A stretch of 64,000 nt of DNA from Hyaloraphidium curvatum SAG 235-1 (lineage: Eukaryota > Fungi > Monoblepharomycota): NCBI GenBank assembly GCA_025558095.1, contig JAIVFI010000030.1:1-64000 (forward strand). The letters run 5' to 3'. Positions 1 through 60,498 of this stretch are shown here, in pieces. The stretch's first letter is position 1. Every line of letters starts with the position of its first letter. Position numbers and translations under genes: made by a program. The notes below the pieces were generated by a model. The model saw only the letters and a list, made by a program, of their open reading frames with translations, had not been told where the DNA came from and made no database searches.

Positions 1-537
1 CAGGTGCTGCCCCGCGTAGGCGTTGTAGTCCGGGTGCTGCTGAGAATAGCCGGCCCACTGGCCCGCCTGGGGATGGGGGTATCCCTGCACGGCGGTCCCC
101 GCCGACGACGACGACAGGTGGTGGTCCGACACCCCGCGTTCCTGGTACTCCCCGTCGGTGGTGGCCGAGCCCGAGCCGGCGCGGTTCGCGGAGCGGGAGG
201 CCCCGGCCGACCGGAAGCCCTTCTCGCCCTTTGCCGGGAACACGCAGGGGAGCTCCTTGGCGCGGCAGCGGGCACAGGCGCCCCCTCCGGCTGCCTCCTC
301 GCCCTCGCACGTCTTTCGGGCGCTGCGGCAGCTATTGCACGCGACCTTGCGGCGAGGGGGAAGGGGCGCGTCGGCGTCGCCGTCGCCGTCGCCGGTCGGG
401 TAGGCGCAGCCGTGGCCCGCGGCCGCGCACCGCGAGCACGCCGGCAGCTTCCGGTCGCAGCTGCGCTTCCGGGCGCGGCACGCGAGGCAGTTGAGCGCCG
501 CCCCGCCCTCGCGCGGCCGCTTCTTGCCGTCGCCCAT
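1..537 (-). CDS. Zn(II)2Cys6 transcription factor with two zinc clusters (5' part; runs off window start)
   Basis: Manual translation from ATG 537: MGDGKKRPREGGAALNCLACRARKRSCDRKLPACSRCAAAGHGCAYP...KVACNSCRSARKTCEGEEAAGGGACARCRAKELPCVFPAKGEKGFR. Open to position 1; not in ORF track. Confidence 0.9.
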   Translation of the reverse strand, partial: MGDGKKRPREGGAALNCLACRARKRSCDRKLPACSRCAAAGHGCAYPTGDGDGDADAPLPPRRKVACNSCRSARKTCEGEEAAGGGACARCRAKELPCVFPAKGEKGFRSAGASRSANRAGSGSATTDGEYQERGVSDHHLSSSSAGTAVQGYPHPQAGQWAGYSQQHPDYNAYAGQHL

Positions 538-1813
538 GTAAACGGCGGGCCCCGGGAACCGGTTTGGGCGGCAAACAAACAATCGCGGCGAGCGGGCGAC
601 GCCTCCCACGCGGCCGCACGCCGGCAAGGACGCCGCGCCGAGCAGAAGCGGGTTCCGAGCGGGCCGGGCCCGCACGAGCAGCCAGGGGAGCAGGGGGCGG
701 GAACCAGCCTCCGCTCCATGACGCATCGTCGGAGCCAAAATCCCCGTGCGACCGCCGGCAGTTGGATCCGGGATCGTGCAGTCCTATACGGCTGCCATCG
801 TACGAGAGCAGCGAAGCGGATCGGTTTCCGGTTCGCCCGCCCCCGCGCAAGTTCGAGCGTGGCCGAACGAAAAAAAGGAGCAGGGACCGCGGCCGCCTTT
901 CGGACGGCGGGCCAGAGGCACGCATCCGCCAGCTGCGTAAGCAGGGGCCACCCGGCAGACGCCGCACCGCTCGGCGCCTCGGCGTGCGCCGGGTGGCGAT
1001 GTGTGAAGGGTGCCCCGGTGCTAGACGGCCACGAAAACCCGCCCGAGCCCGTTGATGGCAACTTGAAACTGGGCGGTCGATTCCGCCGGAAAAGTCGTCG
1101 GTAACATACGCTCATGCTGTCGGAGATTTTCCAGTCGATGGCGTGGGCGGGGAACCCGAGGGAGGAAAGGCGACCGGTTCGTTCCGCGGTCTTGGGCCGA
1201 GAAGCACAGGTTCCCGGCAGCCTGGCAATGCTTCAGCGGCCCGCGGTTGAGAAGGTGCGGAGGCGTGTCTTTTTGATGACTTCCTGCCGTTTTTTCTGGG
1301 GGGCGTCCATGGCACGATATGGTCCTTTGCTCGTCAGAAGAGTCCGGGGTCCCTGCAGGCACGCTCACCTGTCCAGAGGCCGGTGCATCCCGTGGTCCGG
1401 AACACAGAAAGATGCTGTCCGAGCCGATTCCGCGGCGACACTTCCCGCGTGAGGCGATCGCGAAACCGGAACAGGAACGTCTACGAGACAATACGGGCGA
1501 GGCGATTGGCATTGCTGCAAACGAAAGTTCCAAGTCCCTGTATTTTTCTTTCATCTTCCCTCGTTTCGCTTCCCTGGGAGCGTGTTGCGGAGCAGATCCT
1601 GTGTTGGCACGGGCGGCCACCTCCGCTCGCCGCAGCGCCGCGCTGGTACGTACGGTCCCGTCGCCTTGCCACCCTCTCCCTGTGGGATTCACCCCACGGA
1701 GAGAGGACACACGGGACGAACGACCAGCGAGCTCTCTCCCGACGGGAACCCGTCGTAACCGTGGGCTCGACTTGTGAGCGGCACGGGGAAGCGCGACGCG
1801 TTCCCGGCGCGGC

Positions 1814-4135
1814 ATGTCCGCGCCGAGCCGCCCGCGGGTGCCGCCGTCGAGCTGCCTCGCCTGCCGCGTCCGCCGAAGGAAGTGCGACCTGGCGAGGCCC
1901 GCGTGTTCGCGGTGCGCGTCGACGGGGAACGATTGCCGCTACCCCGAGGGCGGGACGTGGGAGGGCAGGGACAGGGAGGCCGGCCCACCCCGCCGGAAAA
2001 AGGCGTGCAAGGCCTGCCGCCTGATCCGAAAGTCTTGCGAGGCCGCCGTTGGAGATCAGGACGGGGAACCGAAGCCGGGGGACGGGCCGTGCGCGAGGTG
2101 CCTCGAGAGGGGAATCGAGTGCGTTTTCCCGGCGCCGGGGGAGAAGGGCTTCCGCACGAGGAGGGAATCCGCACGTCGTTCCGATGATGGAGATGAGGAT
2201 GTGGTGGAGGAGGAGGGGTTTGTCGACCCGGAGGACGGGGTGGACGCGGCTCCCTGCTCGCTCTCCCCTTATTGGACCTCGGCCTCGTGGGCGTCGTCTT
2301 CGGAGGTTCCGACACCTTCGTTGGCCCCCGCTTTCGGACCCCAGGAGGCTACCTCCCCCGCGGAACCCAAGCCCGCCGCCGCACCCACGCTCACGATGCA
2401 GTTCCTTCTTTCGCTCCTCCCCGACTTTTTTGACGTCGCGGACGCGCTCTATCCGGTGTTCGATCCCCCGACCTTCCTCGCCGGCGCCATCAACGGCACC
2501 CTCCCCGACCTCCCCCTCAAATCCGTCCTCCTGGCCGCCCTGCGCCAGGGCTACGACAACGGCGACCCGCGGCTGCGGGACGGCGACGCGGTCCGTGCCA
2601 CGGAGCTGTCGCTGTTCGCCGACGTGAAGCGGGACGTGTCCCACCTCGCCGGCCGCGGCATCCGGAGCCTGCCCTTCAGGGAGCAGCCCGCTGCCGTCGG
2701 CGCCCTCGTGTGCCTGATCGCCTGGTGCCACAATGCCGCGATGCTGGAGGCCGCGAGGGAGATGGCCGCGCTGGCTGCCCAGTGGGCCCGCGAGGCATTG
2801 CTGGCCGAGCGCGGCAAGATGCCCTGGGAGGATCGGTTCGCGGAGCTGCTGGGCGCGCCGGACGAGTGGACCGCCCGCGCGATGCCGCTCTCGCCGCCGC
2901 AGCTCCGCGCGCTGCGGGCGGAATGGGCGGAGCACATCCTCCCTACCCGGCTGTGCGTGCTACTGGCCAACATGGCGGGCCAGCGGCGCGATTGGACCCG
3001 CCGGGAAGAGCCGGTGCTGCACGAGCTTCTGAACGTGAGGGCGACCCCGTGCTACGCGGTCATCAAGGCCAGCGAGCAGGAAGACTGGGACGCGCGCACC
3101 GCGCCGCCGGTGCCGCCCATGTCGTCCATGGTCTCGTGGATGTCGCTGGAGCCGGGATCGCCGGCCCGCAGGGACGCGCTCCCGCCGCTTTCGGGGTACA
3201 TCCTCGGGGTGCGCAACGCTCTGCCCGTCATCTACAACGCCCTGCGCGCCCGGGCCGATGCCTTCCTCGCCGAGTGCCTGGCCGCGGGGGTGCGCACGCC
3301 GTTCCTCCTCGGCTCCGGCGCCGCCGGTCCCCACGAATCGAGCCTCTTGGCGCTGCGCGCACGGACCGACGCCGCCTTCCTCGACGCCATCTCGGCATGC
3401 CCCGCCGCCGCGCGGGGCGACGCCGCGGGGATGGTCCGCGCCCTCGAGCCCGCGCACGGTTTCTACCACGCGTGGGGGCAGGTGCACTACTTTTCCGCCT
3501 TGAAGGTGATGCGGCTGGAGATGTACTCGTCGTTCGGAGTGTTTCTGCTGGAGAGCGAGGTGGAGAGCTCGGAGGGGTCGGCGGATGCGGGAGGGGTGGT
3601 CGGCCTGGGCGAGGCTGTGGCGGACGAAATGGGGGCCGGTGGCGTCCTCACTGGTCTTCTCGCCGACGTAAGTGTTTTTATGCTTGGCCAGCGTGCTCGC
3701 TGCTAAGCCTCGTTGCTGACCGCCGGATGCCAGGTCATCCACGCTACCCAGGTCCTCAGGCAGCTCCTGGACCTGAACCCCGCCCTCGTCCGCGCGCTCC
3801 CGATCGCCGGTCCCCTCGTACTCCGCGTCGCCCTGCTTTCGACATTCATGTACCGCCGCGTCGAGCCCCTCCTCTCGGGCTCGCCGCACCTCACCGAGCT
3901 CGCCGACGACGTGCGCTCCGCCTTCTCGGTGCTCGAGGCAATGGCGGCACGCTGGCCCCGCAGCCTGCTCCCGGCGCAGCTGGCGTTCGCGCGAAAGGTC
4001 GCGGCCGGGCGGGATGTGACCGGGGCGGAGGTGGCAAGGGCGCACGGGAGGGGTTGGGTAGGCGAGGCGAACAACATCGAGGCGGCGGCGGCGCTGGCGG
4101 GGGTGCTGCGGGCCGCGTATGGCGGACAAGGGTGA
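1814..4135 (+). CDS. Zn(II)2Cys6 transcription factor with two zinc clusters and a fungal TF middle region
   Basis: CLACRVRRRKCDLARPACSRCASTGNDC and CKACRLIRKSC...CARCLERGIEC. Intron 3668-3733 (gtaagt...ctgac...cag) joins ORF 1814 in frame to the 3734-4135 exon. Confidence 0.9.
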
Positions 4136-4272
4136 TTTGCGATCGTTTGTGGGGACGGGCGGTGATGTGAATGACAGCGGAGGTGGCTGATCGCCTGTTG
4201 GTGCGACCGTCGGGGTTCCGGGCCGCGACCCTCGTCACACGAAACTGACAGCGCGCGAACACCAAACAAACC

Positions 4273-7106
4273 ATGTTCGCTCCGTGGGCCTCCGCAGACG
4301 CAGGCGGCGTCGCCTTTGCCCTCCTTTCTTCGCTCGCCTTTGCCCTCGGTTCCCTCGGCGTCTCGGCCTGGCCCGCCTCCCGCGCCGCGGAGCTCGTCTT
4401 TCTCCGCTCCCTGGCGACCACCGCGCTGCTCCTCTTATGCTCTCCACGGTCCGCGGACGGCCGAATCTTGCCGAAAGGCTCGCTTGGCATCCTCATCCTG
4501 CGGGCTGCGGCTTCTGCGGTTGCCCTGGTCTGCGTGGTGGCCGCGGTCGGGGCGATCGGGCCCACGAGGGCCGCGGTGGTGGCGCAAAGTAGAGTGGTGA
4601 TCACGGTTCTGGCGGGTGCAATGTGGTTGGGAGAGGGCATCGGGGTGAGTTTTCGTTCACGAGCGGGAGAAGTCGCATAAGCTGACCGCCGGGCGTCGCC
4701 CAGGTCGTCGACTTGATCGCTGCAGTGCTCTGCGTTGCCGGCGTCGGCCTCGGCTCTCTGTCTCACCACGGCCCGGATGTTGGCCACGGCAACCTGGTCG
4801 GCATCCTCGCCGGCCTGGCCTCGGCGTGCGCCTCGGCCGCCCTGTCGATCAATACGCGGCACCTCGCTCGCCGCCCGATCCGCGGGCTCTCCGCGTCGCA
4901 CCTGCTCCTCGCCAACACCGCGGGCCCCGGCATTCTCCTGTTTCCCGTCGTGGCATGGGAACTTCTGACTCCTCGGATCGGCCCCCCGGGCCTCTGGGGC
5001 TTGGACTTGCCTCTCCTGGCCGCGATCGCGAGCCTCACCGCAGCGGGACAGTTCGCCTCCATCCGCGCGTCGCAGATGCTCCCCGCGGGTAGGGCAGCCC
5101 TGTGCTCGGCGTCGCAGGTGTGCTTCGCCATGCTGCTTGACCTTGCACTGGGGAAGCCGGTCGGGGTATGGGAGCTGGCCGGCGCGGGGTTGGTGCTGTC
5201 TTCGGTGGTCTGCGCGGCGGGACATGGTTCCGAGCAGGACGCCATGACCGGACGTGGCGAGATCCGACTGGAAGACGGGCGGGGCAAGAAAGACGCGGCT
5301 GACAGGCCGTCCGACGGTGAGCGCAGGTGTCGCTCCAGCCTGCGGGCTTTTGGCCTCCCGGGGCTGCTCCTGGTGGCGGCGGTGATCTGCATGATGCATG
5401 CGCAGAAGACTGGGCAAGCCACGGACGAGGACTTGGCCGAGATGCCGTTCCCGCCACCAGAGCCCGATCCAGCGCTGCCGATCGTGGAGAGACTGGTACA
5501 ACGCAATCACCCGGAGCCGGAATCCCAGATTCCGGACGACCCTCCGACCACGCCATTCGCGTTCCAGCAGTTCACCACCCGCGTCGTTGCTCTCTCCGCA
5601 TCCGTCGCCTCCCATCCTGACGCCACCCTGGTCGAGCTCACCGGCGACGTACGCGACCTCCTTCCCCTCGCCCCCCTCTCTTCCCCACACGAACTCCCCG
5701 CACGCTCGATCGACATCCCCCTCGCTCCAAAGATCACCTCCCTCTCGGGCGCACCCGTCACATACATGCTTCCCGGACCTGCCGGCGCCCAGCCCCGCGG
5801 CGCTGTCCTGCTCGTGCAGGCGTGCCACCGCTACGCCTCGTTCGCCGACTTTTTCCTGCTCCCGCAGCAGCGCCGCCTCGTCGCGCACCTGCTCTCGCTG
5901 GGATTCGCGGTGTTTTCGCCCGGGTACGTGCGGATGGGCCGCACGCTGGGGGATTCGTGCGTTGACATGTTCGATTACCCGTGGAACCCGGACCTCGTGC
6001 GGATGAAGGCCGCGGCGGAGGAAATGCTGGACCTGATGGAGGCACAGTTCGGCAAGGGGGTGCCGCTGTTCGCCTATAGCATCTCCGGCGTCGGCACCTT
6101 CCTCGCCGCCCTCGCGCGGATCGTCAGGTTCGATGCGGTCGCCATCGCCGCGAGCCCTTGGGACCCGAGCGACGGCCAGGCCGCCGCGACGCCCGTGCTC
6201 CTCCATGCCTTTGCTCGCGACTACCTCCTCCGCCCCGAGGCGGCGCTCGAGATCGCCGCGAAGCAAGGGCCGCGGAGGGTGCTCCTCGACCGGCGAGTGT
6301 TCACATCGCCGGACGGCAAAGCGCTGTGGAGCCTGCTCCCCGAGGCGTTCGGCTCGGAGCGGGACGCAGAGGGGCTGGTGGAGGCGCTGTGCGCGCAGGG
6401 GCACTGCGGGCGGTACACGGAGGCCGCGACCGGCGGGATCAACCGCACAGCCGATAGGGATGAGCTGGTGGAGCGGATCCCGGCGTACGGTGCGGCGTTG
6501 CAGAGCACTCGGAACGCGACCGCGCCGCCGGGGAGGGAACCGAGGCGGGTCGTGGACATGGAGCTGGGGATGTACCAGCCCGGTGGGGAGGTTGTTGTGC
6601 TCGCCGGATACCTCGGCTGACGTCTCGTTGTTGCGACAGGGTACTTCGAAAACGTCACGGACTTCCACGAGGTGTTCGAAGCGCCCCGGCTCGAGATGTA
6701 CCGCAAGGCCATGCCCCTGGACGCGCTTACCTACGCCGTGCGCAGCGAGAGGGAGAAGAGGGAGGGCAGGGCTGGTGCACGCGGCCGAAAGCTCTTCCGG
6801 CGCCTCCTCGGCGCGGCGGAGGACGAAGGCGGGCCGTACTACGCGTGTCCCTGGCGCGAGGACGAGTTCGATGCCGCCGACGCCGGCTGCGACGTCCTCC
6901 GGCACGAGGTGCCAGAGGCTTTCTACGCCGCGCTCTTGGAAGACCCCGACTTCGGGCCTCTGGTTCGCAGGAAGGCGAGGCTGTACCACAACCTGGCGCT
7001 CAGGCTGGCGGTGCAGGCGCTGGGGTACTACCACAGCAGCTTCGCGGACTTTGGGATCAAGGAGGAGGTCGGGGCGTGGTTCTGGAGGCACCTCGGATCG
7101 GGGTGA
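4273..7106 (+). CDS. EamA/DMT-type transporter read in frame into a membrane-anchored alpha/beta-hydrolase-like domain
   Basis: Introns 4645-4703 and 6583-6639 keep frame. About 10 hydrophobic segments with EamA-like LAGAMWLGEGIG and LLDLALGKPVG. Then a TM helix, AVLLVQACH...GFAVFSP...PLFAYSISGVG and a C-terminal YHSS. Confidence 0.7.
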
Positions 7107-48118: not shown

Positions 48119-48945
48119 CGTTAGCGGCGTTGCGGGGGGAATGTGTCTGGGGTGCTTCTGTGGAAGGGCTGGGACCAGTACGTTGTCTCCCGCGGCCGAC
48201 GAGTAACTACCTGCATCGCCGGCGTCCGAAGCTATTTCGCATGGTCGCGAGCATTGGAGCGATTGCGTCCTTCAATGATCCGGGCGCCGTTTCCCGTAGA
48301 CTCCTCGCACCGGCCCTAACGGCCTCGAAACGGCATGGCCTGCGCAGGCTTTCTCTCTACTCGTGACCGCCGGTGCTCTTCGTCATCGCCCAAGCGGCCG
48401 ATCCGAAGCCTACAGCTGTGACGTGCTTCTTCTCTGCGGTCGCCGCTGCAAGCCTTCGGCAATGCAGTTTTCGCGACGCGGCGGAGCCGCTATTGTTGCG
48501 GGTCCCCGATCTGCGGAGCTGTCTACTGCGGCACTAGAGGTCACTTGCCCGAGATGCTTTTGCACCGTCTGCCAACGTGCAACCTTTAATGTGAGGTAGG
48601 GTTGGCGCTTGAGTGGTGAGGACTCACAGGATCAATGGCCGGACCCGCAGGGTCCGAGGCGGCGGCACGGCTTCTGGAACCAACAAGGTCCGCCGGCCCG
48701 GGCGCGAACGGTGATGCATTGGATTGTTTCGGACCACGGAATCCGTGAGTGTGCTTACTTGGTTCAATGTCCGATGTGTCACGTCTCTCGGCCTGACGAT
48801 GGAATCGGCGCGGCGAATGCGAACGGACGGACACCCCAGCCACGCCAGAGCGGCGGCAGGGGAGGTCTTTGCGGCAAAATCAACCGCAGCAACGGCTCGC
48901 AACTCCGCCGCGTGAGCTTCTTCGAGTCGCTTCGCGCTTGCCGTT

Positions 48946-49161
48946 ATGAGGCCGCCGGCCTTCGCGCTCCTTGCCGCGCTGCTCTTCCTAGCGTTCCTCT
49001 GGGCGCCGCGCGCGTCCGGCCTCGCCGTTCCCTCCCAAGCCGGCGAAAATGAGGAGCATGCGTTGGCTGCGCGAGTGGCCTCCCCCGGGGGCCAGGCTTC
49101 CGGTCCGTTGCGGTCAGGCGAGATCTGGTCGGTCCTACGCGAATCCGCTAGGGCGCGCTAG
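48946..49161 (+). CDS. Small secreted peptide precursor candidate (71 aa)
   Basis: Signal-like MRPPAFALLAALLFLAFLWAPRASG, acidic pro-like segment ending ALAAR. Its stop overlaps the opposite gene's stop in CTAG at 49158-49161. Confidence 0.35.
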   Translation: MRPPAFALLAALLFLAFLWAPRASGLAVPSQAGENEEHALAARVASPGGQASGPLRSGEIWSVLRESARAR

Positions 49162-50498
49162 CACATGGCAGCCAACGCAGCCGCGGCGGCAAGTGCGGGC
49201 ACCAACCCGGCCATCGCCCTGTTCCCGCCGGCGATCCGGCTGCTCGTGACGGTGCTGGTTGCGCCGGTGGTGGATGCGATGCTGCTGGACGCGATGGTGC
49301 TGGAAACCACAGTGCTGGACGCGAGGGTGCTGGTCGCGGTGGAGCTGGCGTCGGTGCTCGGGGCTATCGTGCTCGGGGCCGCAGTTTCCGTGGTGCTCGG
49401 AGCGGCGGTGCTGGGAGCGGCGCTGCTGGTCGCAAGAGTGCTGGGGACCGCGGTGCTGGAGACAACGGTGCTGGATTCCACCGCGCTGGATTCGACCGTG
49501 CTGCTGGCCACCGTGCCTGTGGAGGCCACGGTTGAAACCGGGGTGCCGGTCCCCGCGGCACTGGATGCGATCGTGCCCGTCGCGACGGTGCTGACGGTGG
49601 CGGTGGTCGAGCCGGAGATGGCGGCAAAGGGGATGGCAGGGGAGCCGTCGACGACGGAGGCGCACCTGGCCGTCATGGCGACTGCGGCGGGGAAGTTATC
49701 GGCGTGCAGTAAGGGGGGAGAGAGAGGGGGCCATACAGGTGATGGGGCCGAGCGAGACGGTGCCGCAGTTGCCGGCGGTGACGTCGAAGGTGCCGACGCC
49801 GGTGAAGGGGATCTGGGGTGGCAGGAAAACGCGTCATGGGAGGCGGCCAGCAGGCGACGGGGAGAAACCCACGGTGCAGGCGTCGTTACCGAAGAAGGCC
49901 ATGGTGCCCGAAGCGGCGCCAGGGGCGCAGGCAGGGCGGCCGAAGGCGGGGATGCCGATGAAGCCGAGGGGCACGCACTGGTTGGCGATCACGGCGGCGG
50001 CGGTGAGGTAGGTGCCGGAGCAGGTGGCGCCGGACCACTGGGTGACGACGAAGTAGTCGCCCTGCGGATCGGAGCGGAGCGTCAGTGCTGGGCCGCGCGC
50101 GGAAATGGCGCGCGGCAACCCACCGAGCCCTGGAGGGTGAAGGACTGGGGTGCATTGGCGTTGCAGGTCTGGGTCACGTCGTAGGGCACGTTGGCGCTGC
50201 TGGACATGCATGCGACGCTCCCCTGGCAGGTGGTCGGCAAGTTTGCCTGGACTGCTTGGGGGGGAAGGGGGTGAACGGGGGACACTGATCAGTGAGGGGG
50301 GAAGGCGCCGCGGCAGCACGCACAGAGCTGCGGCGCCGTGGCGTTGGCCGTGCAGCCGCTGTCGGGCAGGAAGCCGTCGATGATGGTGGCGCCCCGGGCG
50401 GGAACGGCGGCCGCGGCGAGCAGGGCGGCGATGATCCCGAGCGCTCTGACGCGCAGCGGGAGTCCTGACTGCGAGCAGCTATTCTGCCGCCGAGTCAT
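49158..50498 (-). CDS. GPI-anchor-type cell-surface protein: receptor-kinase ectodomain plus Ser/Thr stalk, no kinase
   Basis: Signal peptide; four introns at the same positions as in the receptor kinases; Cys-rich ectodomain; 5-residue S/T repeats; C-terminal AGGNRAMAGLVPALAAAAALAAMC*. Confidence 0.85.
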
Positions 50499-50986: not shown

Positions 50987-53384
50987 CTATCCGACGATCT
51001 CGTCCAGCTCCTTGGCCACCTGCACGAACGTCGGCCTCTTCTTCGGGTCCTGGTCCCAGCACCGCTCCATAAGGCTCCACACTGCGTCCGGAACCCCCTC
51101 GGGCCGCTCCGGGCGGACGCCCTTGACGGCAACGTTGTACAGGACCTGGATGGGAGGTGGTTGTCAGCGTTTGTCGCGATGGCGGCGCTCGCACCCACCA
51201 ATGCCGGGTTCAGCAGCTCCTCGAGCGGGTACTTGCCCTTGCTCACGACCTCGTAGCACAACATCGAGAACGCGTACACGTCCGCCGGCTTCTGCAGCGC
51301 CGCGCCGTCCACCAGCTCCGGCGCCAGGAACCCCGGCGTGCCCGAGAGCCCGCCGCCGACGGTGCCCGCGGCGGTCGACTTGCCGACCTCCTGGCGCACC
51401 CGCGAGAGGCCAAAGTCGGTGATCATGGCTTTGCTGCCGTCAATGAGCACGTTGAGGGACTTGATGTCGCCGTGCAGGATGCCGAGGCCGTGCAGGTAGA
51501 CCATGCCGTTGGCGACGTCTTCGAGGAAGCGCAGGCCGAGGTCTAGGGGCCAGCCGCGGGCCGACAGGTACTTGCGGAGGTTGCCGTCGCGGACGAGGTC
51601 GGTGACCATCATCGGGGGAGAAGGGCAGTAGGCCATCAGCGGGAGGACTGCGTAAAAGCGTGGAGATCAGCACCTCCACAGACTCCGAGCCGTTGGCGAG
51701 CCGCTCACCGTTACGCTGGACGAGGCCCTCCCAGTTGGTCACCTCCTTCGCAAAAGCCTTCAGGGTGTGCTCGTCGAGGTCTCCTTTCAGAGTCTTGACT
51801 GCGACTCTAGTCCCGCGCAGAGTGCCGACATAGACAACCCCAAAGCTGCCTTCTCCCAGCTTTTGCGAGCTGTCGATGACGATGTCCGTAGCCGAAACAA
51901 GGAGCTTGGAGCTCGGCTGCGGGACAGGGGGGGGGGCGATCGGGCTTCCGCCCGGAAAAAGGGGAGTGCCGGAGGCGACCGACCCAGCGGCGAGCGTGGA
52001 TCCTGCTGTGTCCGCAGAAGCTCCGTCCCCAGAGGCTGCCAGAGGAAACGCAAGAGCAACGGCGGCAGCGGGTGTCACGGGTAAAGCTTGCTCCTGGTGT
52101 GGGTCGTTGCTCGGCACTGAGGCGACGTCCTCCGCGAGCGCAGGGTTGCTGGCTTCGGAAGGTGAAGCCGCCACTCGCGGCACGCTGTCAGCGTTGCCCC
52201 TGGCGGTGGATGAAAACCCGCGAACTGTCCCAGGTTCCATATGCGGCGAGCCTGCAGGCATCTGCTTCTCTGCTTTCTCCGCAGGAATGCTCTCCGCAGG
52301 CCTCCTCCTCCGCCTCATCCAGAACAGCAGCACTACAAGCAGAGCAAGCGCCGCGAGTCCCCCAAGTACACCGCCTACGATTGCTCCGACGGGCGGCGAT
52401 GAGGAGGTCGGCGGAGAAGGGAGAGGCGTTGATTGCGTTGGCGTCGTGGTGGTGACGGATTGGGTACTTGTCGTGGCAACCGATCCCCCTGTAGCCTCTG
52501 CAAATGGAATCGGGAAACCCTGAAGCGGGTAATCGCACTTGGCCGTTAGAGCGACTGTGGCGAAACTGGTCACCAGAACTTCACGAAGAACGGAGCCGGA
52601 GGGCATACACGTAGCAGAACCGAGATTCAGAATGTCGCAGTGGCCGCGAATGGCTTTGAACGTGCCAAAGCTGGGGAAGGGCCTCTGCATGGATGCCGTG
52701 CGCATGAATAGGGTAACGCAGAGCGCGCATGAGCGGTAGGGGAAAACGTACCGAACAGGCCCCGTCAACAAAGAAGGACAAGCTCCCTTCCGCGTCGGTG
52801 ACGCCGGAGCATGTGGAGAGGCCATAGGCCGGGATGCCGAGGAAACCAAGCGGGACGCACTCATTGGTGAGCACCGCGGCGGCGGTAGAATATGTGCCGG
52901 AGCAGGAAGTGCCGGACCATTGGGTGAGGACGAAGTAATTGCCCTGCGCGGAAAATGCAAGAATCAATGGAGAGAGTGGGCGCGGCAGAAGGCGAGTGAA
53001 GAACCACCGTGCCCGAGAGCGTGAATGACTGAGGGGCGCTTGCGTCGCAAATCTGCCGAGCGTCGTAGCCAACGCTGGAAGTAGATTCACAGGCTAAATT
53101 TGCCTGACATGTCCCGGGTAGCTGGGCTTGGATTGATGGCGGTTTCGATGCCGGCCGAGTAGTGGCCGGTGTGAGCACGCACGAAAGAAATCAATGCTGC
53201 GCGGCAGCTCACAGAGCTGCTTGAAAGTGCCTGCAACAACGCATCGGCTCCCAAGAGTGAAGCCGTCGATGATTGTCGCGCCCCGTGCAGGAACCGCCCT
53301 CGTGATGATGGCGGCGATGATCGCGACCACGATGACGCGAGGCGCCGCTAGCGGCCCTGAATTATTGCTCCGATGCGCAGTCAT
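50987..53384 (-). CDS. Single-pass receptor-like TKL kinase, copy L (7 exons)
   Basis: Signal, Cys ectodomain, Thr stalk, TM VGAIVGGVLGGLAALALLVVLLFWMRRRRR, GEGSFG, VAVK, HGDIKSLN, DFG, GTPGFLAPE, CWDQDPKKRP. Confidence 0.88.
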
Positions 53385-54086
53385 GCTCGAGATCAACGTC
53401 GTAGCCACGCGTGTGCGGTGGCGGCACTTCGTCCCCCCGCGTCGGACTGCGCCCCGGCACAGCCGATCCGATGGCAAAGTCCGCGGGCGCGAACTCCGCT
53501 TGCGGCAAAGTGGTGGCCGGAACCCGCTCGGTGGCGCCGTGCGCTTGAAGCTCGGGGCGAGGGAGCAACGGAACGTTGCCACGGGTTTGGGGTCGCGTGC
53601 GACGCCGCGGCAGGCCGCTTGAGGACCGCGTCCCGAACTCCGACGAGGTAAACCCAACTGCAGCGCCAGCCCAGGCAACGGGCCTAACGTCCGGGAACTG
53701 AAGGCCTGTTTGAAGGCCCACGGCAGCGACTATGACCGCACGCGAAGCGGTGGTGTTCCTTGGAGCGGAGCGAGGGACCTCAACGAAGTCGAGCGCACGT
53801 CCTCGGGGCACGTGGGCGGCGCGGGGAGGGTTTCCGCGTCGGCACTCGTCCCGTCCAGGTCGAAAACCCAGCGTAGTTTTCGAGCAGGGGAGAGAGCGGC
53901 TGGTGGCGGCTGGAGGTCCGACGGTTCCAAGGACGCACTCGTCCGAGAGAGCCTGTACGTCTACATCCCTCACGCCCGCTTGGAGGCAGCTCGAATGGAG
54001 CAGCAAAGGAATCAAGAGCCGCCTTTTCGCGATTGTACAGGCCTGCAATTAGCATCTCGGCGTCAAACAGCTTCATGCTCCTGTGG

Positions 54087-58060: not shown

Positions 58061-60498
58061 ATGCCTCCGCGACGACTTCGCTTACAGCCGCGACGAATGA
58101 CGCGCGTCTGCGCTGTCGGGATCGTCGCCGCGTTGATCGCCACGCGCGCGGTTCCGATCTGGGGCGCGACCATCGTCGACGGCTTCATCCCCGGCTCGGG
58201 CTGCAGGGTCAACGCCACCGCGCCGCAGCTCTGTGCGTCGACGCCCGGCCCCCACCCGCTCCTCACTGATCATGTCCCCCCTTTCCCTCTCCTGCCGAGC
58301 AGTCCAGGCGAACCTGCCGACCACCTGCCAGGGCAACGTCGCCTGCATTCCCAGTAACGCCACAGTCAACTACGACGTGACCCAGACCTGCAACGCCAAC
58401 GCCCCCCCGTCCTTCACCCTCCAGGGCTCGGTCGGTTTCCGCGCCCCATTTCCGCGCCCGGCACACTCTGACGCCCCCCTCCCCCTCCCATCCGCAGGGA
58501 GACTACTTTGTCGTCACCCAGTGGTCCGGCGCCACCTGCACCGGCACCTACCTCACCGCCGCCGCCGTGATCGCCAACCAGTGCGTGCCCCTCGGCTTCA
58601 TCGGGATCCCCGCCTTCGGCCGCCCTGCCTGCGCCCCTGGCGCCGCTTCGGGCACCATGGCCTTCTTCGGTAACGACGCCTGCACCGTGGGTTTGGCCTC
58701 GTGGCCCAGCGCCCGCCCTCCCATGACGCGTTTGTCCTGCCGCCCCAGATCCCCTTCACTGGCCTCGGCACCTTCAGCGTCACCGCCGGCAACTGCGGCA
58801 CCCTCTCGCTCGGCCCCTCCACCTGTAAGTCCCCCACTTCCCCGCCCTTTACCCCGCGCTGACAACTTCCCACCCACAGTCGCCCTGACCGCCAAGTGCG
58901 CCTCGATCGTCAATGGCTCCCCGGTCATTCCTTTTGCTGCTATTGCGGCGGTTACAACTACGACAACAACCACGACAACGCAAACGTTCACCACCGCGAC
59001 ACCAACAGAGGCGACACCGGTTCCTCCAACGCCAGCATCCTCATCTCCACCTGTTGGGGCGATCGTCGGTGGCGTGATCGGAGGAATCGCGGCGGTCGCG
59101 GCCATCGCCGGGCTGTTGTTCTGGCTGCGGCGAAGAGGTAGGCCTGCGGAAAGTGTTCCTGCGGATCCAGCAGAGAAGCAGCAGCCTAGAGGCTCGCCGA
59201 ACCTGGAAACCGCTGCGACAGCTCAGCACTACAAGGGAGCGGGCCCACCACCAGCGCCAAATGGCTTCGTTGCTTCTGCTCCAGTTCCCGCAACCATTGC
59301 CGTTGACAGTGTCCCGCGAGTGGTGGCTTCAGCTCCCGAACCTAGCAAAACCGCACTCCTCGTGGACCTCGCCTTGGTGCCAAACAATGACGCGGAACAA
59401 GCTTTGCCCGTGCAGCACGCTGCGGCCGTTGCTCTTGCTTCTCCTCCGTTGGGTATAGGGGGTGGAGCTGAGGACACGGGATCGACCTTCGCCGCGGCCT
59501 CACTTGCCTCCGGTGCTCCCCTTCCCCCCGGCGGCGGAACCCCGATCGCCCCCCTCCCTGTCCCGCAGCCGAGCTCCAAGCTCCTTGTTTCGGCTACGGA
59601 CATCGTCATCGACAGCTCGCAAAAGCTGGGAGAGGGCAGCTTTGGGGTTGTCTATGTCGGCACTCTGCGCGGGACTAGAGTCGCAGTCAAGACTCTGAAA
59701 GGAGACCTCGACGAGCACACTCTGAAGGCTTTTGCGAAGGAGGTGACCAACTGGGAGGGCCTCGTCCAGCGTAACGGTGAGCGGCTCGCCAACGGCTCGG
59801 AGTCTGTGGAGGTGCTGATCTCCACGCTTTTACGCAGTCCTCCCGCTGATGGCCTACTGCCCTTCTCCCCCGATGATGGTCACCGACCTCGTCCGCGACG
59901 GCAACCTCCGCAAGTACCTGTCGGCCCGCGGCTGGCCCCTAGACCTCGGCCTGCGCTTCCTCGAAGACGTCGCCAACGGCATGGTCTACCTGCACGGCCT
60001 CGGCATCCTGCACGGCGACATCAAGTCCCTCAACGTGCTCATTGACGGCAGCAAAGCCATGATCACCGACTTTGGCCTCTCGCGGGTGCGCCAGGAGGTC
60101 GGCAAGTCGACCGCCGCGGGTACCGTCGGCGGCGGGCTCTCTGGCACGCCGGGGTTCCTGGCGCCGGAGCTGGTGGACGGCGCGGCGCTGCAGAAGCCGG
60201 CGGACGTGTACGCGTTCGCGATGCTGTGCTACGAGGTCGTGAGCAAGGGCAAGTACCCGCTCGAGGAGCTGCTGAACCCGGCATTGGTGGGTGCGAGCGC
60301 CGCCATCGCGAGCTTCGCTGACAATCACCTCCCACCCAGGTCCTGTACAACGTCGCCGTCAAGGGCGTCCGCCCGGAGCGGCCCGAGGGGGTCCCGGACG
60401 CGGTGTGGAGCCTGATGGAGCGGTGCTGGGACCAGGACCCGAAGAAGAGGCCGACGTTCGTGCAGGTGGCCAAGGAGCTGGACGAAATCGTCAGATAG
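58061..60498 (+). CDS. Single-pass receptor-like TKL kinase, copy R (7 exons)
   Basis: Introns 58233-58302, 58431-58497, 58687-58748, 58825-58879, 59777-59837 and 60287-60339 give an open signal-ectodomain-stalk-TM-kinase frame ending LDEIVR*. Confidence 0.92.

Follow-up and report, generated by a model that had tools for sequence, protein, structure and literature searches.

Introduction

In plants and animals, a mainstay of signalling is the pairing of a surface receptor kinase with an anchored copy of its ectodomain that lacks the kinase. The ectodomains of SLG and SRK in Brassica are highly alike and are kept so by gene conversion, TRAIL-R3/DcR1 is a GPI-anchored decoy within the TRAIL receptor cluster, and the CEBiP/LYM proteins of plants act together with the LysM kinase CERK1 as ligand-binding co-receptors. 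To our knowledge, no family of fungal GPI wall proteins has an N-terminal domain in common with receptor kinases. A search of the literature retrieved no account of a fungal receptor kinase whose ectodomain has a GPI-anchored paralogue, and LRR receptor-like kinases have been reported in chytrids (PMC13618815).

Here, a stretch of 64,000 nucleotides from Hyaloraphidium curvatum SAG 235-1 (Monoblepharomycota; positions 1 to 64,000 of contig JAIVFI010000030.1, referred to below as C30) was analyzed. This whole stretch is called the window, and it has the character of G+C-rich eukaryotic DNA with short introns. One of its genes (gene A) had been described in an earlier reading of the sequence, hereafter the original prediction, as an ectodomain-only, GPI-type twin of the receptor kinase lying to its right (kinase R), and had been proposed to act as a decoy, a co-receptor or an ectodomain donor. 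In order to evaluate this interpretation, which was partly supported overall, spliced gene models were compared exon by exon with Pfam and with searches.

Results

Architecture of gene A

Gene A runs from 50498 to 49158 on the minus strand and encodes 363 amino acids in five exons (Table 1), separated by four introns of 72, 62, 60 and 55 nt, all with GT..AG ends. It corresponds to KAI9010042.1 at NCBI (P0002, 290 aa), a hypothetical protein of Hyaloraphidium curvatum that begins at a Met inside exon 2; exon 1 is omitted from that model, which hence has no signal peptide, while its exon 2-5 joins are identical to those of the five-exon model. The longer model is preferable because exon 1 has an open frame and a good donor site, and because the mature N-terminus is conserved in kinase R and in two further paralogues described below, gene C and kinase L. 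The omission of 50324-50498 from the public model is therefore probably an annotation error. Given exon 1, the protein is predicted to carry an N-terminal secretory signal peptide, with a hydrophobic window at residues 17-34 and a small-x-small site before the mature N-terminus.

The mature ectodomain comprises 174 residues with ten cysteines. It is followed by a stalk of 128 residues, 52% of which are Ser or Thr; Tandem Repeats Finder returned a period of 15 nt in the corresponding DNA, and the autocorrelation of residues peaks at lags 5 and 10 (0.4-0.46). The stalk is probably O-glycosylated. Gene A does not have the layout of a receptor-like kinase, in which a protein kinase domain comes after a membrane span: Pfam returned no kinase match on any of its exons, and the frame stops at 49158, directly past the hydrophobic tail.

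Table 1. Coordinates of gene A, its parts and its paralogues on contig C30.
Feature	Position	Strand	Remarks
Gene A, exon 1	50324..50498	-	ATG at 50498
Gene A, predicted signal peptide	50498-50391	-	residues 1-36; mature N-terminus from 50390
Gene A, exon 2	50124..50251	-	ectodomain, N-terminal and more variable portion
Gene A, exon 3	49873..50061	-	conserved core of the ectodomain, 63 codons
Gene A, exon 4	49737..49812	-	gene model
Gene A, intron 4	49682..49736	-	55 nt; spliced in RNA
Gene A, exon 5	49158..49681	-	end of ectodomain, stalk and tail
Gene A, ectodomain end in exon 5	49614..49681	-	holds the tenth Cys
Gene A, Ser/Thr-rich stalk	49230..49613	-	residues 213-340; 15-nt (5-residue) period
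Gene A, probable GPI attachment signal	49158..49232	-	three-part plan; stop TAG at 49158-49160
Kinase L	50987..53390	-	older paralogue; introns confirmed by RNA joints
Kinase R	58097..60498	+	seven exons, 677 residues; ectodomain 58102-58949 paralogous to gene A
Gene C	67531-68473	-	just outside the window, ~9 kb beyond kinase R; NCBI protein P0003, 231 residues

Relationship of gene A to kinases R and L

The first four introns of kinase R lie at the same codon positions and in the same phases as those of gene A, as had been claimed from the letters. Exon 3 of gene A, said to differ at only a few bases from 58498-58686 in kinase R, matches it at 185/189 bases, the four differences being three synonymous ones and one Ser/Thr change. 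The pairwise identity per exon that had been proposed as a check gave 79%, 87% and 91% for exons 1, 2 and 4, and the introns are 76-88% identical. Past the shared domain, kinase R continues with a Thr/Pro stretch, a membrane span of ~25 residues, a basic cluster and a kinase domain (PK_Tyr_Ser-Thr in Pfam), whereas gene A has its Ser/Thr stalk of 5-residue period and a 15-residue hydrophobic end. That the membrane span and the kinase are replaced in gene A is a fair description, and one that is silent on which form came first. All that the original prediction reported as seen in the letters is thereby confirmed. No similarity was found when the 5' flanks of the two genes were compared, suggesting that A and R are probably regulated separately.

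Kinase L stands further from gene A: its exon-3 part (52752-52943), the sole ectodomain part compared as protein, has ~60% identity to A. In their kinase domains, R and L have 99-100% identity (59591-60286 vs 51199-51900), with intron 5 matching at 61/61 positions, and the stalk, membrane span and juxtamembrane parts of the same two genes are 62-77% identical. The alignment indicates a recent gene-conversion tract confined to the catalytic domain. At intron 1 of kinase L (53126/53213), the acceptor in the RNA joint lies 9 nt downstream of the site expected from A, R and C; this would shorten exon 2 of kinase L by three codons, unless the site is an alternative acceptor.

A second GPI-type gene

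Besides A itself, R and L, a search of the assembly with exon 3 of gene A picked up a kinase gene on contig C25, at 48% identity, and a copy at C30:67894-68082 that belongs to gene C. Gene C has the same four intron positions, a stalk of only ~10 residues and a hydrophobic tail at its end, and the exon joins of its NCBI protein, P0003, agree with this structure. In a word-based protein search, P0003 (the product of gene C) retrieved A and C only, and the open frame of R restricted to exon 3 retrieved no match. Over the mature domain, R and C are identical at 165/174 residues (95%), while the A-R and A-C pairs are each identical at 152/174 (87%). Judged by these identities, the closest twin of kinase R is gene C rather than gene A; the original prediction was thus right that A and R are paralogous, and its wording of a twin applies better to C. 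At the nucleotide level, exon 3 is identical between A and C at 186/189 bases.

The coding tails of A and C align in nucleotides through the stop codon, with a score of 38 vs 19.6 ± 2.5 for shuffles. The two tails are therefore homologous, and the GPI-type form predates the split between A and C and is not a one-off truncation.

Gene conversion among A, R and C

In the three-way alignment of A, R and C, identity is a mosaic. An unbroken identical run of 216 bp between R and C extends across intron 1 and exon 2 (128/128) and reaches into intron 2, while an unbroken identical run of 179 bp between A and C extends from inside exon 3 into intron 3, where R and C are only 75-85% identical. Across exons 4-5, C once more lies closer to R. 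Both runs extend over borders between exon and intron, and the background divergence is 13-25%; selection at the protein level cannot explain them, and they are therefore conversion tracts. The alignment thus points firmly to an exchange of sequence among A, C and R by gene conversion, in which A takes part with C and, via C, with R. The tracts come from one genome, which gives them no direction; the suggestion that gene A is an ectodomain donor is accordingly supported only as exchange, through the tracts that link A with C and R with C. Among the three roles originally proposed, it is nonetheless the one for which the sequence gives direct support. The locus is thus a network of paralogues that exchange sequence. 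All three genes lie within 19.3 kb (49158 to 68473).

The C-terminus of gene A

The C-terminus of gene A follows the plan of a GPI attachment signal, with small residues at 340-343, a spacer at 344-348 and a hydrophobic run at 349-363 (49205-49161) followed by the stop, the 15-residue run ending the protein with nothing after it. As a guess, the omega site might be residue 340 or 341. Related ends were found in gene C, in G40 (a GPI-type gene on contig C40), in P0004, in P0012 and in the environmental protein P0008, all of which show T-S/T-R-P-x-x-A/G-G, a few residues, 14-18 hydrophobic residues and the stop. When the tail of G40 was used as a query, similar ends were found on many contigs, and in 7 of the 10 unlinked loci that were read the stop lay 0-7 codons past the matched stretch. 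This recurrent plan looks like a species-typical GPI signal, and the tail consensus could serve to list the GPI proteome. The tail of gene A keeps S-R, two Gly and the hydrophobic tail, with a poorer fit to the consensus than that of gene C. In addition, the transamidase subunit Gpi16 (PF04113) is encoded at C5:408981-410661, with a score above the cut-off.

Many unlinked genes end alike (loci L032, L034, L035 and L038-L041, on contigs C6, C7, C12, C18, C35 and C46), the shared ending consisting of an Ala/Thr/Ser/Pro stalk, T-S/T-R/K-P-x-x-A/G-G, a short spacer, 14-18 hydrophobic residues and the stop. The shared pre-tail motif was also considered as a sign of ancestral GPI forms, and this was rejected because many unrelated genes end in the same motif.

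The Ala-rich and moderately hydrophobic character of the tail, together with the departure of gene A from the species consensus before it, would also fit a C-terminus that is not a GPI signal, the protein being either secreted or held by a short C-terminal membrane span. This alternative is distinctly unlikely, given that the hydrophobic run comes after small residues and a short spacer and leaves no cytosolic residues, whereas the true span of kinase R has ~25 residues and a basic stop-transfer cluster; moreover, the plan recurs at many loci and Gpi16 is present. We infer that the protein of gene A is GPI-anchored at the cell surface or wall. The ectodomain-only, GPI-type architecture originally proposed is thus supported in silico.

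Transcription and constraint

Contigs of run X1, which is listed as 'RNA?', skip introns at the locus with minus-strand GT..AG ends, which indicates that this run holds RNA. In the RNA-derived contigs, intron 4 of gene A is spliced (joint 49681/49737, with CT..AC ends). Exon 5 and the tail are covered by contigs at 49440-49681 and 48628-49374, without differences, and exon 1 by a contig at 50362-50498, so that the gene is not an untranscribed one, which the original prediction had named as a finding that would refute it. Intron 4 is the only RNA joint for gene A; the contigs break off in stretches of identity between the paralogues. The same contigs include a loose end that fits the spliced exon 4/5 junction of gene C at 30/30 positions and differs from both A and R, indicating that gene C is expressed too. 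Over the 174 codons of the mature domain, dN/dS was 0.39 for A-R, 0.51 for A-C and 0.31 for R-C. Gene A is therefore expressed and constrained by purifying selection.

These results bear on whether gene A could be a decaying, functionless partial duplicate of kinase R, as the missing kinase half and a public annotation that lacks a signal peptide might suggest. With five open exons, all splice sites intact, dN/dS values of 0.4-0.5, a transcript that is spliced and a tail homologous to that of a second intact gene, decay is very improbable.

Two further observations concern the downstream side of gene A. One RNA-derived contig runs from the coding tail of gene A to 48628 and across a minus-strand intron (48569-48627) toward a downstream 7TM gene. 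In addition, a small plus-strand ORF (48946-49161) sits within this minus-strand transcribed stretch, and may therefore be untranslated region rather than a gene.

Ectodomain family and predicted fold

Pfam returned no match to the ectodomain, whether with every exon of A, with P0003, with P0001 (the product of G40) or with the whole family alignment, and when PDB sequences were searched with a profile, nothing matched even at E up to 10. A family profile was built from the core (exons 3-4), leaving out the exon 1 and exon 2 peptides. Searched against 1.84 billion representatives, it retrieved only 13 proteins with E no greater than 0.001. Of these, six belong to H. curvatum or to environmental eukaryote-like contigs, and the long bacterial matches cover just a short beta-strand motif of Ig-like repeats. 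Gene A (P0002) matched the profile with E 1.7e-32, and four Cys columns are nearly invariant; by profile match and Cys pattern, gene A thus belongs to this Cys-rich ectodomain family. In the kinase gene on C25 (L014:4839-5363), the ectodomain lacks introns 1-3 and keeps the position and phase of intron 4, suggesting that introns were gained or lost within the family.

The AlphaFold2 model of the mature domain of gene C, computed from 13 alignment rows, was confident for residues 60-172 only, which were all beta (pLDDT ~80-90), and the ectodomain is accordingly predicted to be beta-rich. Against the PDB, Foldseek found no structure similar to this model at E below 0.001 (and nothing below E 0.27), and the best hit of a wide VIA-align search had Z 5.0 (secretin and FHA-like beta sheets), below the noise level of the tool. 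The nearest ESM Atlas clusters by shape and features were unnamed oomycete proteins and the CfaA_B_C family (PF11912) of counting-factor-associated proteins from Dictyostelium; the likeness to these (TM 0.42-0.47, feature scores 0.78-0.82) was all within the range expected by chance. The PF11912 model did not match the exons of A, P0003 or P0001, and its best match, to the environmental P0008, had E 0.086 and 13.3 bits vs a cut-off of 28.6, so that by gathering score the family would not be placed in PF11912. The ectodomain is an undescribed Cys-rich domain, beta-rich according to the model.

Related loci in the genome

Family loci number at least 11, on contigs C30, C25, C40, C38, C19, C13, C32 and C2. 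The domain is found with GPI-like tails (A, C, G40 and P0004), with a membrane span and a kinase (R, L, the C25 gene and K40) and, in P0012 (KAI9019955.1, C19:700745-701689), with a trypsin-like peptidase (Trypsin_2, E 2.8e-11) and a GPI-like tail. The environmental relative P0011 has no kinase neighbour in its context. On contig C40, the GPI-type gene G40 (P0001, KAI9003501.1) lies 5 kb from the kinase gene K40; the two have a common block of 432 bp that is 92% identical, with nothing alignable beyond it. In the C40 kinase (L030:3700-4320 vs L029:8600-9200), a gap of 5 nt relative to G40, close to the beginning of the shared exon, puts the conserved domain of the assembled sequence in a different frame from the exon before it.

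A different relationship was found for contig C48 (30.6 kb; L011-L013), a fold-back, redundant contig whose bases 1-6077 repeat C30:50536-56635 in reverse complement and whose bases 6086-29548 correspond to C30:50530-74000 at 99.95%, the fold point lying ~35 bp upstream of the ATG of gene A. This contig doubles every family count in genome searches. It was considered as a second haplotype without gene A, and this was rejected since a fold-back contig says nothing on presence or absence.

The distribution of the domain has to be weighed against a further account of the locus, according to which gene A encodes a self-sufficient GPI glycoprotein of the wall or surface (structural, adhesive or wall-binding), the kinases are derived wall-sensor versions, and the likeness to R results from linkage and conversion. 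The domain occurs on GPI-type proteins that have no close twin among the kinases (P0004), as well as on the protease P0012 with its GPI-like tail, and may be a general wall-binding module; fungal wall proteins usually combine a long Ser/Thr stalk with a GPI signal, and the dissimilar 5' flanks of A and R agree with separate regulation. On the other hand, two loci keep GPI-type and kinase genes with near-identical ectodomains within 5-10 kb of each other, and purifying selection acts on the ectodomain of either form. This account is possible, yet we would not call it probable.

Discussion

The interpretation that we favour, and which we place just on the probable side, is that gene A is an intact GPI-type gene carrying the ectodomain of kinase R, kept alike by conversion, with a ligand-capturing or competing role at the wall. 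Its protein would be secreted and GPI-anchored, and perhaps passed on to the wall. With a stalk ~3x the length of that of R, the domain would be held well above the level of R, far from the membrane, where it would bind the ligand of R without signalling. This long stalk is our reason for preferring, in the case of gene A, a decoy or sink at the wall, which would capture or compete for ligand, to a co-receptor working side by side with R. Gene C has hardly any stalk and would be better suited to act as a co-receptor of R at the level of the membrane.

A more specific possibility, which we regard as quite unlikely, is that the region of C30 between 49 and 69 kb is an SLG/SRK-like fungal recognition locus, in which the R, C and A forms are kept matched by conversion for one specificity (cell-cell, mating or self/non-self). 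If that reading were true, C would be the membrane-near and A the wall-distal GPI form, and a module of receptor and anchored ectodomain would have been invented independently in an early-diverging fungus.

The locus is compact, carries clear traces of concerted evolution and an undescribed ectodomain, and comes from a lineage that branches near the base of the fungal tree. As a small case that is open to testing, it may show how genes for decoys or co-receptors originate from receptor genes or contribute to them. The analysis also corrects the truncated public gene model KAI9010042.1.

Among known systems, fungal GPI wall proteins of the adhesin-like kind have the same plan as gene A, with a signal peptide, a globular N-terminal domain, a Ser/Thr stalk and a GPI signal. 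The likeness to SLG/SRK of Brassica lies in an ectodomain-only gene that is linked to a receptor kinase gene at a distance of kilobases and whose domain is homogenised with that of the kinase gene by conversion, and the alignments of A, C and R are consistent with an arrangement of this type. In other respects the two differ: SLG is secreted, whereas gene A is fungal and of GPI type; Pfam returned no S-domain match (B-lectin, SLG or PAN) in gene A, which would thus fall outside that family; and the role in self-recognition is a feature of the Brassica pair. TRAIL-R3/DcR1 (TNFRSF10C) resembles gene A as a clustered paralogue that keeps the ectodomain and has a short-period repeat stalk and a GPI end in place of the membrane span and signalling domain. 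Its fold and signalling domain are unrelated to those of gene A, and its role as a decoy has been shown, whereas for gene A we infer one. Finally, plant CEBiP/LYM and CERK1 offer the likeness of GPI-anchored proteins with the ectodomain of a receptor kinase; these are old, diverged paralogues with LysM, whereas A and R are near-identical, linked copies under conversion, built on a domain other than LysM.
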